Assembly: GCA_013115145.1 (NCBI GenBank)
Contig: JAAPAO010000099.1
Coordinates: 14,397 to 78,396, forward strand
Source of the DNA: Perkinsus chesapeaki ATCC PRA-425
Lineage: Eukaryota > Protista > Perkinsozoa
DNA length: 64,000 nucleotides
Direction: 5' to 3'
A model generated the notes under the pieces. It was not told the origin of the DNA, did no database searches, and was given only the letters and a program-made list of their open reading frames with translations. Shown piece by piece: positions 1-10,500 of the stretch. Within the stretch, counting starts at the first letter, position 1; the number at the start of each line of letters is the position of its first letter. A program made the translations under genes and the position numbers.

Positions 1-825
1 GAGCTGCTTTTGAGTTTATGAGCAACCGATCCAAATGTCTGTTTGTGATTTCGGGCCAGGTCTTTACCTCGTAAAGATGGGTGGGGGCCCCAATCTGAGA
101 GTCTCAGACTGAGACCAATGGGTCCCACGAGAGGACTATCTAGTTGAGTCAGAGCCAGTGGTATTGCCAGTTAGGGCAATCACACACTAAAGGCCGAGCT
201 GTCTCAAAGACGGTGTCTCTCAGAGAGATTCTCCCTTAGCTCCATTAGGACCTCGCCTGTGCTCCTTGGGCCTCGCCAGGGCGGCCCTGGCAGGGCCTTT
301 TTCCAGTCATAGACCGGGACAGGGGCTGCTTGGTGATGCTCAGTCTCAGAGCGGCCCAGATTGGGCCTGATTCCTAAGGAGTTGGGTGGTCCGTGTTCCA
401 TTGAGGGGTTATCGTTCTGTCGTCATTGACGAATCGTCATTTTGATGGCGTCGAAGGACGTGAAGTCGACCTCTGCCTGCCTGGGTCTCAGGCTGTGGGG
501 CCGGTAGTCACGGGCTGGTTAGTAACAGGCAGTTTACATCTGGGCGATGTTGGCAACATTATGCTGCCCAGTTCTCGCAAGAGGGGGATGTGTAGAGTTA
601 CAGCCTCTGGGCCAGAGGCTGTGGCTTTGTGTAGTCGCCTGCTGAACGAGTCCCGCTCCCATACCTCCCCATCGTTCTCTGTTTTTTTTTCTCCTTTTTT
701 CGCAGCTCAGCCGCTCCTTTCTTAGGCCCATTGGTCCACCCCTAGTCACGTCGGGGGAGGTTCACAAGCATCTGCAAAACATCGCCGACCTCGTTAGCGA
801 CAACGCTAGAGAAGAGGAGAGGCTT

Positions 826-2929
826 TTGCTAGAGTCCTTGGTGGACGGCACAGGCGAACGTGGCGTACTTTCGCGAGATGACTTTGCAAAACCTACTGAC
901 TCCATGACACATCTTGTAAATATCTTCCTGGAGGAGGTGGAAATCTTATCCTCACCGCGTGTGGTCGAGAAGATCATGTCGTGGGCCGCTCTGGATCGTG
1001 AAAGCCAATCTGAGAGTACCGTCTGGAATGAGCTTGAGAGTTCTATCCAAGTCTGCGCAGAGCGAATAAGGAACTCGTGGGGTGCGGTCTTGGGGGTTCC
1101 CACTCGGTCCGCCTTGGCGGGTGGTCCTATTCGCGCTCCGCTTGTAGAGGCAGTACTCCGAAAGATGCAGAAGGAGTCTCCCCAACGAAAAATTGACTCG
1201 GATATATTCCCGGAATATATCCGAGTCAATTTTTAATATTATATTATTCCGTCTGATTGATGTCGGAGTGCCTCTGGGGACATCATCCGAGGTGGCCGTC
1301 AGTGGCGCTTGGCCTACTTACCACCCCAAGCACAAGCACGACTATCAGCTCTCGCGCGATCTCTGGCGAAACTATGAATCCGCGGAGCATTATAGCGAGG
1401 AGGTTACTAAAACTATCGAGGCCGAGATCACGGCTGACCGGATGGCGGTCATTGACCGAGGTGACCTTGGCCAAGTTCGAGCCGTGACTCGACTAGCGTG
1501 CATCCCGCATTTCAAAGAGGATGGTACTATTCGGAAAGTCCGGTTAATCGATGATATGAGGCGAAGCGGTGCGAACTGTCTTAGAGAGCCTAACCTGCAG
1601 GAAACTATCCTGCTTCCATCTATACGTTCGGCGGTGGCCGCTGTGCTGCAGGACGAAGGTTCGCCAGGTCCTAGTTCTCCAGGCCGCGTTTTCTGGCTCG
1701 AATCAGATATCCGGAGTGCCTTCCGCCTAGTGCCATTGGCCGAGCCCGACACTTGGTTTTGCGTGAACAAAGTTCATGAGGGTTTTGTGAGGCATTTGAT
1801 GTTGCCCTTCGGGGCTACCAGTAGTCCTCTAATCTTCGTGAGGGCATCTTCAGGTGTCGCTCTCATCGAATGTCGAGTCCGGCGACAGGCGGAGTTGCAT
1901 CCCCGCGTGATCATATACGTAGATGATAGAGGTTCTAAGGCTCGTGCCAAGCAGCTAGCGAAGGCTACACTAATATCAATATTAGTCGACGCAGTCTGCG
2001 GCGTTCCGACCGCCACGGAAAAGTTACATGCCTCTACCACTCCACACTGCCTGGGGTTCGTCATGGATCTTGACAGGGGGGTTCTCACCATCCCGCACGA
2101 GAAATGTACCACAATTGGAGACGCACTACTCCCTCTGACTACCGTAGGCTCTCTTGCAGTTGTGAAAGATCTCGAGCGATTGACGGGCCGGCTCAGTTGG
2201 GTGGCCGGAGCTTTCAAGAGAATCAACCCTTTCTTGTCCTCCTTCTACAGTACTCTGAAGGTTGCCGAGTCCAAGGGTTTAAGGTCTATAACAGTTGGCC
2301 GCAATCTAGCCTACGCGGCCCGTTTCCTCCGTCATTTTATTTCGGCGGACTGCTCTATTCCCTTCAACAGCCTCCTACCGGAGTTGGGAACGCTTGCGCG
2401 AGCTGTTGTCGTATTCGATGCATCTGGTGGCTTCCTCGGGGGTGTTGTATTTGAGCGCAATCCTCCAGGCTGTGGTCATTCGTTCTACTGGTACCACCTC
2501 GATTTGAACGACGAACGAGTCGTTAGCAGCGTAAAACAGATTCTTGGCTATGGCGACGAGGTCTTGGAAGGGATTTGCTTCCACGAGCTCCTTTCGGCAG
2601 CTCTCGGCATACTGCTCACTGACCCATCCCAGCCCGTTGTTGTCGTTTCCGATAATGTGGCCTGTGTGAGAGCACTACAGAAGATGCGGAGTAAGTCTGC
2701 GGCTCTCAATTGTATTTTGGAGCGACTTATGCTCGTTCGTCCTGGCTTGGCAGCCCCATCTCTATATGCGCAGCACCTTGCCGGGGAGCTCAATATCCTG
2801 GCAGACCAGATATCGCGTAGTGATATACAAACTAACCGGAGTATTTTCTACAGAGTTGACGGTGCTGTAGAGCGAGACGCTTTGCTCGAGTTGGCGAAGC
2901 TTACATGCGCAAGGACCGGCGGTTTCTGA
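826..2929 (+). pseudogene. Reverse transcriptase / RNase H polyprotein, frameshifted at ~1207-1243
   Basis: RT motifs DIRSAF, LPFGATSSP, YVDD and CLGF. RNase H acidic motifs VFDASG, HELLSA, VSDN and LADQISR. ORFs 826-1236 and 1193-2929 join in frame if 37 nt (1207-1243) are removed (..KIDSDILFRLIDVGVPLG..). Confidence 0.88.
1188..1234. repeat. Perfect 47-bp palindrome (23-bp arms, 1-nt centre)
   Basis: AAAAATTGACTCGGATATATTCC-C-GGAATATATCCGAGTCAATTTTT. Confidence 0.97.
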
Positions 2930-3062: not shown

Positions 3063-4196
3063 ATGGTCCCAGCATTCACCCCTCTGAAGGCTTGCCAGCG
3101 CGAACTATCAAACCGGAAGTCATTCGGCCGGCCCTCACTGACTCGTGCGGATAGGCCTCCAATCGTTCGTGGGACCATCAGTCCCAAACGACGAGGCTCA
3201 GCCAAGAAGGCCTCATATGTCTCGAAACGTCTGTCGCGTGAGGACGTGAATGCGTTTGTGACTGAAGCCAGGGCCCCCAGTACGAGGAGGTCATATGAAG
3301 CAATAAGGAAGGCTTACGTGAGAGTTATGGAGAGCGCACAAATTGTCCCATATCCGCTGGTGCCGGCTAAAGCTATTCACTTCATAGTATCGCTAGTTAA
3401 GGGCGATTATACGTATGAAAGTGTCAGAAACTATGCACAGCGCATCAAATCTTTAGCGAAAGAGGAACGTGGCGATGTTTTTGATGTCTAGGGAGAAGAG
3501 CGGTTCAAGCTGGCTCTGCGTGCTGCGTCCAAACTGTGCCGCCAGGCCAGTTCAATTGAACAGAAACGCGCCGGGACTTTCACAGCAGACGAAGTCATTG
3601 CTATTGCGCATATCCAGGACCCCTTACACGAAGGAACCGTATGTGCGATCCTATGCGGAGTCAGCTGTCTGTTGAGAGTCAATGAACTGCTGGCGCTATC
3701 TAAGGGCGATATTCACTTCAGCTCTGACGGCCTGTCGGCCCAGATCATCGTAAGGAGGAGCAAAACAGACCCCAGCGGGCGGGGTTGTCAGCTCACGGTG
3801 GGCTGCCTGTGCGGACAAGGCCCTGCACGTGACGAATGCGCGGTGCACAGGCTGAGGTGGTGGGTATGCGTGACATGCGAGGCGGAAGACAGCCTCCTGT
3901 TCCCGTACACGAGAGACCGCTTTATTAAGGACATGTCCGATCTAGCATCCAGAGCAATTGGTTTTCGTGGTTGTGTCGGACGGTCGTTCAAAGGGCACTC
4001 TCTTAGGCGGTCGGCAGCCCAGATCCTCTTTCATCATGGAGTTAACATCGAACACATAGTTGAAGCCGGGAGGTGGGCCTCGTCGCGCTCCCTGTCGATG
4101 GCATACTTGAGAGAAGGAGCATATAAACCTATCCGTCAAGCTGAATTGACGAGGATAATGCTGGACACCTCTCGCTTCCAAGCAGTGAGGACGTAA
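3063..4196 (+). pseudogene. Tyrosine recombinase with a single in-frame TAG at 3489-3491
   Basis: ORFs 3063-3491 and 3672-4196 are in the same frame with only one stop between them. Catalytic R-K-H-R-W-Y pattern: LLRVNE, RRSKTD, HSLRR, GRW, AYLR. Confidence 0.9.
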
Positions 4197-4220: not shown

Positions 4221-4881
4221 GGGAGGAGCTAGGTGTCTGATACCTTTAGCTGACGGCCTTGCAGTCGGCACGTCACAGTGATAGAGTCTTGTGGCTGACT
4301 CATCCGTTCAGGTATCGACGCCAAGCTCGCGACTTTGCCTCCAGCAACTGCTCTACATTGCTGCAAGGCAATGTCGCCCTCTTCCCACTCTCCCGAAGAG
4401 ATAGCTATTTATGCGGAGCACAACTTGTTGTGTGTAGAGTAAATACGCGTATCGCAGGGAGAGCATGTCCGTTGCGCACCAGAGATGTGTCGCACAAGTA
4501 TATATATATATATATACTTTTTATATATATATTACGGGCCAGCGAGTGCCCATGCGACGACGGCCAAGGGTTGTGTTCAAGTAGTGGTTCAAGGCCACCA
4601 GTGTAACCACATGGGCTTCTCGCTAACCTTCCGGTTCATCCTGCTGTAGCAGTATTGTGCCAAAAAAGGCAAATTTTTTTTGTCTCTTTCGGGAGGAGCT
4701 AGGTGTCTGATACCTTTAGCTGACGGCCTTGCAGTCGGCACGTCACAGTGATAGAGTCTTGTGGCTGACTCATCCGTTCAGGTATCGACGCCTAGCTCGC
4801 GACTTTGCCTCCAGCAACTGCTCTACATTGCTGCAAGGCAATGTCGCCCTCTTCCCACCCTCCCGAAGAGATAGCTATTTA
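4221..4881 (+). repeat. 191-bp direct repeat pair (4221-4411 and 4691-4881), 189/191 identical
   Basis: Aligned by eye; the only mismatches are at 4323/4793 and 4389/4859. Confidence 0.97.
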
Positions 4882-4909
4882 CTCTACACACAACAAGTTG
4901 TGCTCCGCA
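4412..4909. repeat. Perfect 34-bp inverted repeat (4412-4445 and 4876-4909)
   Basis: TGCGGAGCACAACTTGTTGTGTGTAGAGTAAATA and its exact reverse complement. Confidence 0.95.
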
Positions 4910-7588: not shown

Positions 7589-10500
7589 TCAACAAACGAC
7601 TGTATAAACTACGTAATTTTCAGTTTGAGTCTCGGCGGCTGCCCGACTTGGATTTATGGTCATTCGAGTGCGCCTTTGAGCCGTGAAAAAGTTGCCCGCC
7701 TTTGGCACGCATTCTCAGATGACACGTGCTGTAAACATATAAATATTTTTCGCGATTAAAGATAACGATTTTTTATGGCGACAGAAATGATGAACTTGAT
7801 CAATGATGAACTTTTGGCCGAAGTGCTCGCCAGTGAATTCAATATTAATGATACTACTAAAATCTCACCCTTCTTTCTTGGGGGAGCTATTCAGAGAAAT
7901 TAACAGTGGAATTTCAGCATCAAACGAATTTCCTGTTCCCTCCATTTTGTTGCGATCCAATCTCTGCGATATGTCCCTCCGGGTCGAACGCTCTCTCTAT
8001 CCAACAACCCTAGAGCTTCCCTATCTGTCCTAATGCCCACAACAACGACTTTACTAACTCAACAACTTCTCAGTGGTACTTACGTATTCAACTATGTAGC
8101 ACCGATACTAAAATGAGTAGCAAGTGTTAGCAATTGATTGATCGGCTCCTAACTGACGGAGCCTGTAATGAGTACAGAAATGTTAAATTCAATGATAATA
8201 ATAATATGAAACTTATATCGACATTGCCCGCATTCTAAACGTCGCAAACGACACTCGATCCTCGTGCCTTTCTCGCAGTTGTTGCTGAACAAAGCACTTC
8301 TTGAGGAATGTTAAACTAGAAATATTACTTGTTTCCAAACCCATTTCCGCATCCGATTGAATTCTGCAACTGACATTGGATCTCGTGGAGGATTGAATGA
8401 TGACTCGCAAGGATGAGTCCGCCGCTCGAGGCCCACTTCTGAAAGGAAAAGGGACAGAGTAATTTTATAAACCGCAAAAACCTAAGTGGTGCGATATAAA
8501 CACATGCTTGTCTAAGGAAGGCAATTTCATGAATGATTCATGATGGGACAACATCGAACATTGATGATGTTGTTCAAAATGGGATTCATGATGAATTCCA
8601 TTTTAATCCCGAGGATTGTATAAACAAATACTTATTATATAATTATAAAGATATGTACATCATCCTACCGCAGCTTCGAACTCCATGACTGGAAGACATA
8701 TTTATCTTGACATTGCATACTTTATATATTTTTCTATTGTACGTATATTTCAACTGTTAATCACCTATATTGTATAGTCTCCCCTCTACTATTACTACCA
8801 TTAAATGACACATGATGCTTGCCATGTTCATTTATTCTCTCTCCATTTCTATCATACCGTAACGGCATCAGTAAACTATGTACCCTATCTCGAGTCCTCC
8901 TGTTCTCTTCCAAAGCAAGCTCATCAAATGAACCTTAAAACCAGCAAGATCTTCAACATCCCACTTGAGATTTCTCCTACTTGTCTCGGCAGGGGCTTCA
9001 CACGTTCGTTTCAGGATGCTATACACTGGCGTTTTGCACTCATGTGCCACATCTTCAGGCTTTACCACCGACCCATTGGCGCCACGCTTGGGAGGATGCA
9101 TTGCAAAGAATCCCGTATGGGGACAGGTTGTGTTGGAAGCTGTCCTGATAGATTATCACATGACCCCTCTCCATGGAATGCCATACAGCAGCAATCGGAA
9201 AACACCACTACGTGACGTTGTAAAGTTAATAACGCAATCGAAGGGACCGATTAAATCTTAATGAAGTCGATACTCGACACTGATTGAGAATAATAAACCG
9301 CTTATTATAATATTGAGACCTTTCAGACATTTACATAATCATTAATAATATATCGGCTGTATTGAACGCATACAACTGCAACAATTGTATTCTAATTTGA
9401 CGGATTCAGTGAAAGCTCCTAGCCGAGAAGAAAAGACAGGCCTACAACTTCTAGGCTTCAAGTTTCGGCCCGGACTTGACATCTGATCGGTATCATATCC
9501 ATCACTGCCAGCGAAACCGAGTACTGCTACTTTCCCTTTATAAATATCAAATCGTCTTTCCCTCCCTTCCCCCGTTTCCGTCGCTCCACCGTATTTCGAC
9601 GCTCTAATTTTTAGATTCTCTTTCCCCTAGTACTTCTTCGGGCTCTTTTCTCCAGCACTTGCCGGCAGTCCACGATGGGGCAACCCAGCATGTCGATGAT
9701 GACCCCCGCCCGCACTCCCTGGACCTCCAGGCTGCTCCTGAGACACCACCTTTATAGATTACTGTTTCAAAGCTTTGAATAAAGAACAGGTTACTTTGAA
9801 CAGATCTCTCACATATCACCAATCAACAAAACAGCATGTACTTGATAAACAGCGAACATTCGGGTTGGCATATCCACAGCGACTGTCGGACAGATTCCTT
9901 TTTTAAGGTTTCCTTCTCCCTTAAAACTTTATTAACATAATCATATCCTGCAGCCTATTCGAGCATTGGCTATATTAAGGGGTTGTTATACTATATTCTT
10001 ATAAGTCATTATTTACTTCATTATCACACTTATTTATTAAACATTTTATAACTCCATTCAAGAAGATCCAAAAACACCCGACACCTTCTCTAGAATTGTC
10101 CGCGCCTCCCCAACTACCTGCACAGCATCGTCATCTAATGACAACGATATCCCTTTCTCTCTAACTTTGGGTCTGGCTCCTACAAGCAGGGATACCACAT
10201 ACTACAAAGCAAGAATTGTAGCTAAAGTGGGTGCATAGTCGCAAGTACGGATTGTCTCTCCAAGGAAGAATCAACCACTCGCCGCTCTTCTCAGTAGTAC
10301 GCTTATGACAAGCATTATCTCCCGAGACATGGAGATTCTTATATTGATAAAAAAGAGGAACGGCCAAAGAGGATGTATTATCAACATGCCTACTGTACTT
10401 GCCCGAGCCTCTCTTTAAAGACATTGAAGATAATTTTGCTACAGTAGTTTCCGAAAAACCGTATCTGTTCTTTACAGGGACATCCCCTCCTTTTTCACTA

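Follow-up and report, generated by a model that had tools for sequence, protein, structure and literature searches.

To our knowledge, the tyrosine recombinase (YR) retrotransposons are the least understood of all retroelements. A methyltransferase domain is present in the DIRS1-like and the PAT-like elements, the latter having the layout A1B1-[ORFs]-A2B2. Ngaro elements, which belong to the DIRS order and are described, for example, from zebrafish and Cafeteria burkhardae, show an A1-[ORFs]-B1A2B2 layout (PMC8547959). Integration of YR retroelements has been proposed to proceed by recombination between a short sequence at the junction of a circle and one identical to it within the target, without target-site duplication (PMC7192593, PMC3266345); in DIRS elements, the shared sequence is a species-specific trinucleotide, one copy of which is left at each end (PMC3266345, PMC7192593). 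DIRS-1 from Dictyostelium reportedly prefers DIRS-1 sequences as its target (cited in PMC7192593 and PMC3266345). As of 2020, there was no experimental study of the specificity of its recombinase (PMC7192593), and no experimental test was found in the literature that we searched. For Cryptons, which are YR DNA transposons, the short direct repeats at the ends have been read as microhomology between circle and target and not as true duplications (PMC13465315).

The window analysed here, a stretch of 64,000 nucleotides (C3492:14397-78396) from the 41.7-Mb Perkinsus chesapeaki assembly, opens within a YR retrotransposon of 6,954 bp (L031:1524-8477 = C3492:12324-19277). P. chesapeaki is a perkinsid alveolate that lives as a parasite of clams. 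The A1 repeat of the element begins outside the window, 2,073 bp upstream, and was read in locus L031 (C3492:10801-20800), which adds 3.6 kb upstream of the window and in which each position equals the window position plus 3596. On the forward strand, the element has the order A1-gag-RT/RH-YR-B1-A2-B2: A1 (L031:1524-1789) matches A2 (L031:8008-8276), while B1 occupies window positions 4221-4411 and B2, the 3′ end of the element, positions 4691-4881. With these A1/A2 and B1/B2 repeats and with its RT and YR domains, the class given in the original prediction, a split-direct-repeat YR retrotransposon of Ngaro layout, was right, and we assign the element to the Ngaro type (DIRS order) by its split-repeat layout and domain content. 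It shares with Ngaro the split direct repeats, the gag-RT/RH-YR order, the lack of a methyltransferase, the lack of a target-site duplication (the target halves adjoin exactly, both here and in C2947) and the presence of scattered solo A-B units. It differs from Ngaro in its host, a perkinsid alveolate, in its very divergent RT and in a conserved dyad-symmetric architecture at the junction, CTCTCCC-N11-(T/G)ATTTA...TAAATA-N11-GGGAGAG. A PAT-like assignment was rejected, as no B follows A1 (B occurs only at L031:7817-8007 and 8287-8477) and no methyltransferase domain was found. A DIRS1-like assignment fared no better, as no terminal inverted repeat exists apart from the 28/34-mer in this copy, which we read as target DNA and which other copies do not have.

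Upstream of the window lies a gag-like ORF pair with a zf-CCCH motif (Pfam; L031:1764-2934, forward strand), and a 1.85-kb spacer separates it from the RT; window positions 1-1192 (forward strand), an internal part of the element, comprise the spacer between gag and pol, which is non-coding, and pol's broken 5′ end. The RT ORF (1193-2929, forward strand, 578 aa) matches 'hypothetical protein FOL47_011361 [Perkinsus chesapeaki]' with 100 % identity and gives an RVT_1 match (E 5.7e-4) that falls below the Pfam cutoff; a word-based protein search with it returned only Perkinsus proteins and one weak, unnamed ENA match. The ORF is presumed to include an RNase H, to judge from a P. olseni homologue of 33 % identity that carries RVT_3 (RNase H-like) at the matching C-terminal position. 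Pfam searches of this copy's ORFs, extended to E values as high as 5, found no RNase H, protease or methyltransferase, and the RT ORF ends at 2929 with the YR starting at 3063. The YR frame (3063-4196, forward strand, 377 codons) matches Phage_integrase (E 1.4e-7) and displays LLRVNEL, KTD, GHSLRR, GRW and the Y of AYL, which are the catalytic motifs of the Cre/Int family; its nearest solved relative is Cre (best PDB match), albeit weakly (E 0.04-0.1).

This copy is dead. Its YR frame contains one in-frame TAG (3489-3491), where the copy in C9 has a sense codon, the 5′ end of its RT is broken by a 40-nt palindromic insertion (1205-1244), and its gag carries a palindrome. Internal sequence is kept in only three genomic copies (C3492, C9 and C630), the one in C9 being 98 % identical to the present copy; most A/B copies throughout the genome consist of a solo A-B unit some 450-500 bp long. 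The palindrome in the RT region (window 1188-1244, L031:4784-4840) has perfect 23-bp arms around a single central C, breaks the pol frame and owes its existence to the 40-nt insertion, which is missing from the C9 copy with its 98 % identity; this palindrome has the appearance of a fold-back or template-switch scar. A second perfect palindrome, with 25-bp arms and likewise a single central C, lies at the end of the gag-like ORF (L031:2628-2678 = C3492:13428-13478), and two palindromic scars within one 7-kb copy suggest a process that recurs in the P. chesapeaki genome.

The B copies differ by two substitutions in 191 bp (direct reading); the repeat search had reported a direct repeat at 4221-4432 and 4691-4902, the true copies being narrower. 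Of the 279-bp spacer originally described between them (4412-4690, forward strand), positions 4412-4680 are indeed A2 (A being about 269 bp), whereas the last 10 bp (4681-4690) are a linker that is absent from A1 but does occur in solo A-B units. Inside A, a (TA)n microsatellite (window 4497-4532, L031:1609-1645) differs in length between A1 and A2 and constitutes their only indel-type difference. The 28-mer that starts A, followed by TAAAT, occurs 31 times in the genome and the B end 29 times, each against 0 in the control; the upstream flank is different at each of the 31 A starts, and TGCGGAG.. is therefore the true 5′ terminus. Genome-wide (loci L037-L093), at least two families can be told apart, which have the 28-mer A start and a CTCCCGAARAGATAG B end in common and are otherwise different: family 1 carries TAAATACGCGTATCGCAGGGAG.. 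in A and ends B with GCTATTTA, family 2 carries TAAATAAGCGTAGTGCAGGGAG.. in A and ends B with GCGATTTA.

The first 34 nt after B1 (4412-4445) recur with 100 % complementarity at 4876-4909 and share there the final TATTTA of B2 (4876-4881). This inverted repeat, which holds a small palindrome of its own (TGCGGAG-CACAAC-TT-GTTGTG-TGTAGAG-TAAATA), cannot be due to chance. TATTTA closes both B copies, which end CTCTCCC-N11-TATTTA, and TAAATA closes the 34-mer. The repeat search and direct reading have accordingly borne out what had been described for this region, namely the positions of both B copies in a B1-A2-B2 layout, the perfect 34-bp inversion overlapping the last 6 bp of B2, and the hexamers at the respective ends. 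We rejected the view that TATTTA is a target-site duplication of 6 bp, given that every B of family 1 ends in the hexamer and that the internal B1|A2 boundary has it as well.

From the last hexamer of B2 onward, the copy reads TATTTA-CTCTACAC..GCTCCGCA, and the 28 bp at 4882-4909 (reverse strand) are the inverse of A 1-28 (28/28). In one of two readings offered in the original prediction, the normal end of the element would be an inverted copy, 28-34 bp long, of its own start, so that split direct repeats are combined with short terminal inverted repeats, and most copies would end in ..GTGCTCCGCA. The first 28 bp of this copy and the 28 bp after its B2 do form a perfect terminal inverted repeat; however, the arrangement is unique to it among 27 external B ends. 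The inverted 28-mer follows 0 of the 26 others, among them the C9 copy (98 % identical) and the solo units of family 1 that lie in C2889 and C3014, and unrelated sequence is found in its place. The claim about most copies is thereby refuted, and a hybrid terminus of this kind appears extremely unlikely; it would, moreover, leave unexplained why the element is preceded at its 5′ end by A 29-98 in inverted and diverged form.

On that side, the flank reads ..CTACGATACGCGTATTTA. At the 5′ junction (L031:1502-1523, CTCCCTACGATACGCGTATTTA|TGCGGAG), it is the inverse of A 29-50 with 21/22 bases matching, and the left flank as a whole (L031:1456-1523), which lies some 2.1 kb before the window begins, matches inverted A 29-98 with 80 % identity (BLAST). 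The 5′ flanks of the other family-1 copies are unrelated to inverted A. The two target halves, A 1-28 and A 29-98, adjoin without a base gained or lost, with one TATTTA per junction. An inverted remainder of A at the 5′ end was what the second reading had predicted, according to which the circle integrated via TATTTA into an older, inverted copy; the reciprocal junction found upstream of the window supports it. We thus consider it very probable that a younger Ngaro-type element inserted into an older, diverged and oppositely oriented A fragment of the same superfamily, which is a known kind of event in a known kind of element and involves no new terminus type. The 34-bp inverted repeat would exist because such nesting pairs the start of A2 with the start of the older copy, and the gapless fit of the two halves agrees with conservative YR recombination. 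The target is taken to be the older partner because of the 20 % divergence of the left flank and the single-copy nature of the sequence farther out. Conservation of the first ~52 bp of A between families accounts for a 28-mer that has stayed perfect in a fragment otherwise diverged. Beyond about 100 bp, alignment to A+B and A+gag revealed no convincing similarity to an older copy, and a genome-wide search of the assembly with the left flank, which might have turned up an empty site or an uninterrupted older copy, returned only this locus. The pre-insertion state is hence a reconstruction, since the assembly holds no empty-site allele.

A rearrangement might also be held responsible, that is, an inversion or ectopic exchange at TATTTA/TAAATA between two opposed resident elements, brought about by the YR or by host recombination. 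Every copy indeed carries inverted TATTTA/TAAATA cores, YRs can invert DNA between inverted sites, and inverted-duplication scars exist in the genome, two of them within this very element. Yet an inversion across two elements would produce chimeric elements carrying intervening host DNA, whereas here a complete A1..B2 unit lies exactly between two adjoining halves of one ~100-bp fragment, which makes such an origin very unlikely. A purely intramolecular inversion (A1 TAAATA × B2 TATTTA) was rejected because it would strip the 28-mer from the 5′ end, where it is present. We also regard as highly unlikely a fold-back or template switch, in which repair or cDNA synthesis would have used A2 as the template for the inverted 28-mer, and a misassembly of repeats. 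The perfect palindromic scars in gag (25-bp arm) and RT (23-bp arm) may speak for the former, but both are directly adjacent palindromes, while the arms in question lie 430 bp apart. Copying, furthermore, cannot make a 20 %-diverged inverted A 29-98 across a 7-kb element, and the two junctions match each other to the base.

The preferred nested insertion can be pictured as follows. The older target would have read ..CGATACGCG-TATTTA-CTCTACACACAAC..GCTCCGCA-CACAAACG, and the incoming element would have been a double-stranded circular cDNA with the junction ..CTCTCCC-N11-TATTTA|TGCGGAG-CACAAC.. (B|A circle junction: ..GATAGCTATTTATGCGGAG..), identical to the internal B1|A2 boundary at 4411/4412, which would be its templated copy. 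The tyrosine recombinase would then have exchanged strands within or next to TATTTA with the identical TATTTA of the target, leaving inverted A 29-98 on the left, inverted A 1-28 on the right and TATTTA at each junction. We infer the circular intermediate, the catalysis by the YR and a crossover position within TATTTA, while the anatomy of the element, its reciprocal junction, the singular arrangement of this copy and the biases in the flanks were observed. The choice of target could be explained if the inverted start of any A acted as a built-in pseudo-attachment site.

A comparison of the two sites illustrates this point. By direct reading, the B|A junction (CTCTCCC-GAAGAGATAGC-TATTTA-TGCGGAG-CACAAC) and the inverse of A 1-57 (CTCTCCC-TGCGATACGCG-TATTTA-CTCTACA-CACAAC) agree in 19 fixed bases with identical spacing, CTCTCCC-N11-TATTTA-N7-CACAAC; the first 57 bp of A are, in other words, dyad-symmetric to the B end. 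As the start of A mirrors the end of B, an inverted look-alike of the attachment site is present in every resident copy, and it is this look-alike that was used in the present insertion. The second family keeps the architecture with different N11 segments and a B ending in GATTTA, and its retention across two families suggests a functional constraint. No description of such an architecture was found in the Ngaro/DIRS literature searched. It is possible, though we would not count on it, that the dyad CTCTCCC-N11-(T/G)ATTTA, 28-bp centre, TAAATA-N11-GGGAGAG represents the recognition architecture of the recombinase. Alternatively, the dyad-symmetric junction could have a role in reverse transcription instead of recombinase binding; as single-stranded DNA, the region does adopt the hairpin one would expect, but its fold is only modestly better than that of shuffled sequence (z = -2.0). 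If the candidate architecture were real, the inverted pseudo-attachment site in every copy would steer new copies into old ones and thus provide a built-in safe haven. The Ngaro-type crossover core would then comprise 5-6 bp, and ATTTA upstream, C at +1 and ACAA around +8 would give a Ngaro-type recombinase its first target rule at the level of sequence.

The flanks of the other insertions bear on such a rule. In 30 independent 5′ flanks, the last 5 nt match ATTTA at 76 of 150 positions, as compared to 39 ± 5 under the null, a value that was reached in 0 of 20,000 resamplings; the bias is limited to positions -5 to -1. Among the 27 3′ flanks, C comes first in 14, and ACAA occurs at +4 to +16 in eight (1.4 expected; 0/20,000). 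Three of these cases have CACAAC at +7 or +8 (C3492, C2889 and C2947), and 5/24 remain when they are set aside (126/20,000). Judging from these biases, insertion targets are inclined to look like the junction to either side, with ATTTA upstream and ACAA about 8 nt downstream. Strict identity of the core was rejected as a rule: besides C2889, which has TATTTAA, the exact hexamer stands upstream only in C3014 (TATTTA) and C332 (GATTTA), i.e., in 2 of the 30 other 5′ flanks, and most family-2 insertions, including a nested one in C2947, lack GATTTA in the 5′ flank. Since the core is often absent, neither the exact crossover position nor a need for homology is established.

The case in C2947 (L007:1500-2390 = C2947:19087-19975) is a family-2 solo A-B unit of 485 bp with a B ending in GTGATTTA, which nests in an inverted, family-1-like A at about position 158, again without gain or loss of a base. 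It inserted 7 nt upstream of CACAAC and represents a second self-nesting in inverted orientation. Two self-nestings in about 30 insertions amount to a strong enrichment, because A/B sequence makes up only about 0.04 % of the genome (rough estimate).

As in the model for DIRS-1, the YR of the Perkinsus elements is proposed to integrate a circular cDNA, which leaves a single copy of the junction sequence at each end and no duplication, and insertion favours resident copies of the element itself. DIRS-1, however, has inverted terminal repeats, an internal complementary region, a methyltransferase and 3 shared bp, as opposed to the direct split repeats and the 6-bp shared core (5 bp in the population bias) found here, and the Perkinsus elements show an additional downstream preference for ACAA/CACAAC. 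As in Cryptons, the end repeats can be understood as microhomology, although Cryptons move as DNA and have neither an RT nor split direct repeats. Parallels also exist to Cre/loxP and to the secondary sites of phage integrases, namely the Phage_integrase domain family and a core of about 6 bp (the overlap of Cre is 6 bp); look-alike sites with a common core and part of an arm are likewise a feature of phage integrases. The 28 bp between the inverted cores, however, are far longer than the loxP spacer and thus point to two separate sites rather than one, and, unlike in Cre/loxP, the binding arms and cleavage positions are undefined.

The present case is hence an instance of published ideas on YR integration, found in an element of the Ngaro type, in which the core is longer and a downstream motif is suggestive. 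Its base-perfect, conservative nesting amounts to a natural experiment on integration without duplication or loss and puts the exchange at a 6-bp sequence common to junction and target; when some 30 further insertions are considered as well, a likeness between targets and the junction of the element itself is suggested. Defined substrates for a recombination assay are thereby at hand, namely the junction site and the second, inverted site within A, as is a lead to the site of the recombinase. In all other respects, this copy is an ordinary decayed transposon with no evident bearing on the biology of the parasite.

A further solo A-B unit, of family 1, is located at C2889:11692-12159 (L002/L043). 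Its 5′ flank ends in CCTCTCTTCCCG-TATTTA-A, which resembles a B end plus one A, while its 3′ flank starts with CTTGAACACAAC, 12 nt of which are identical to inverted A near positions 154-168. What this unit inserted into may have been a transposon remnant itself or else a strong pseudo-site.
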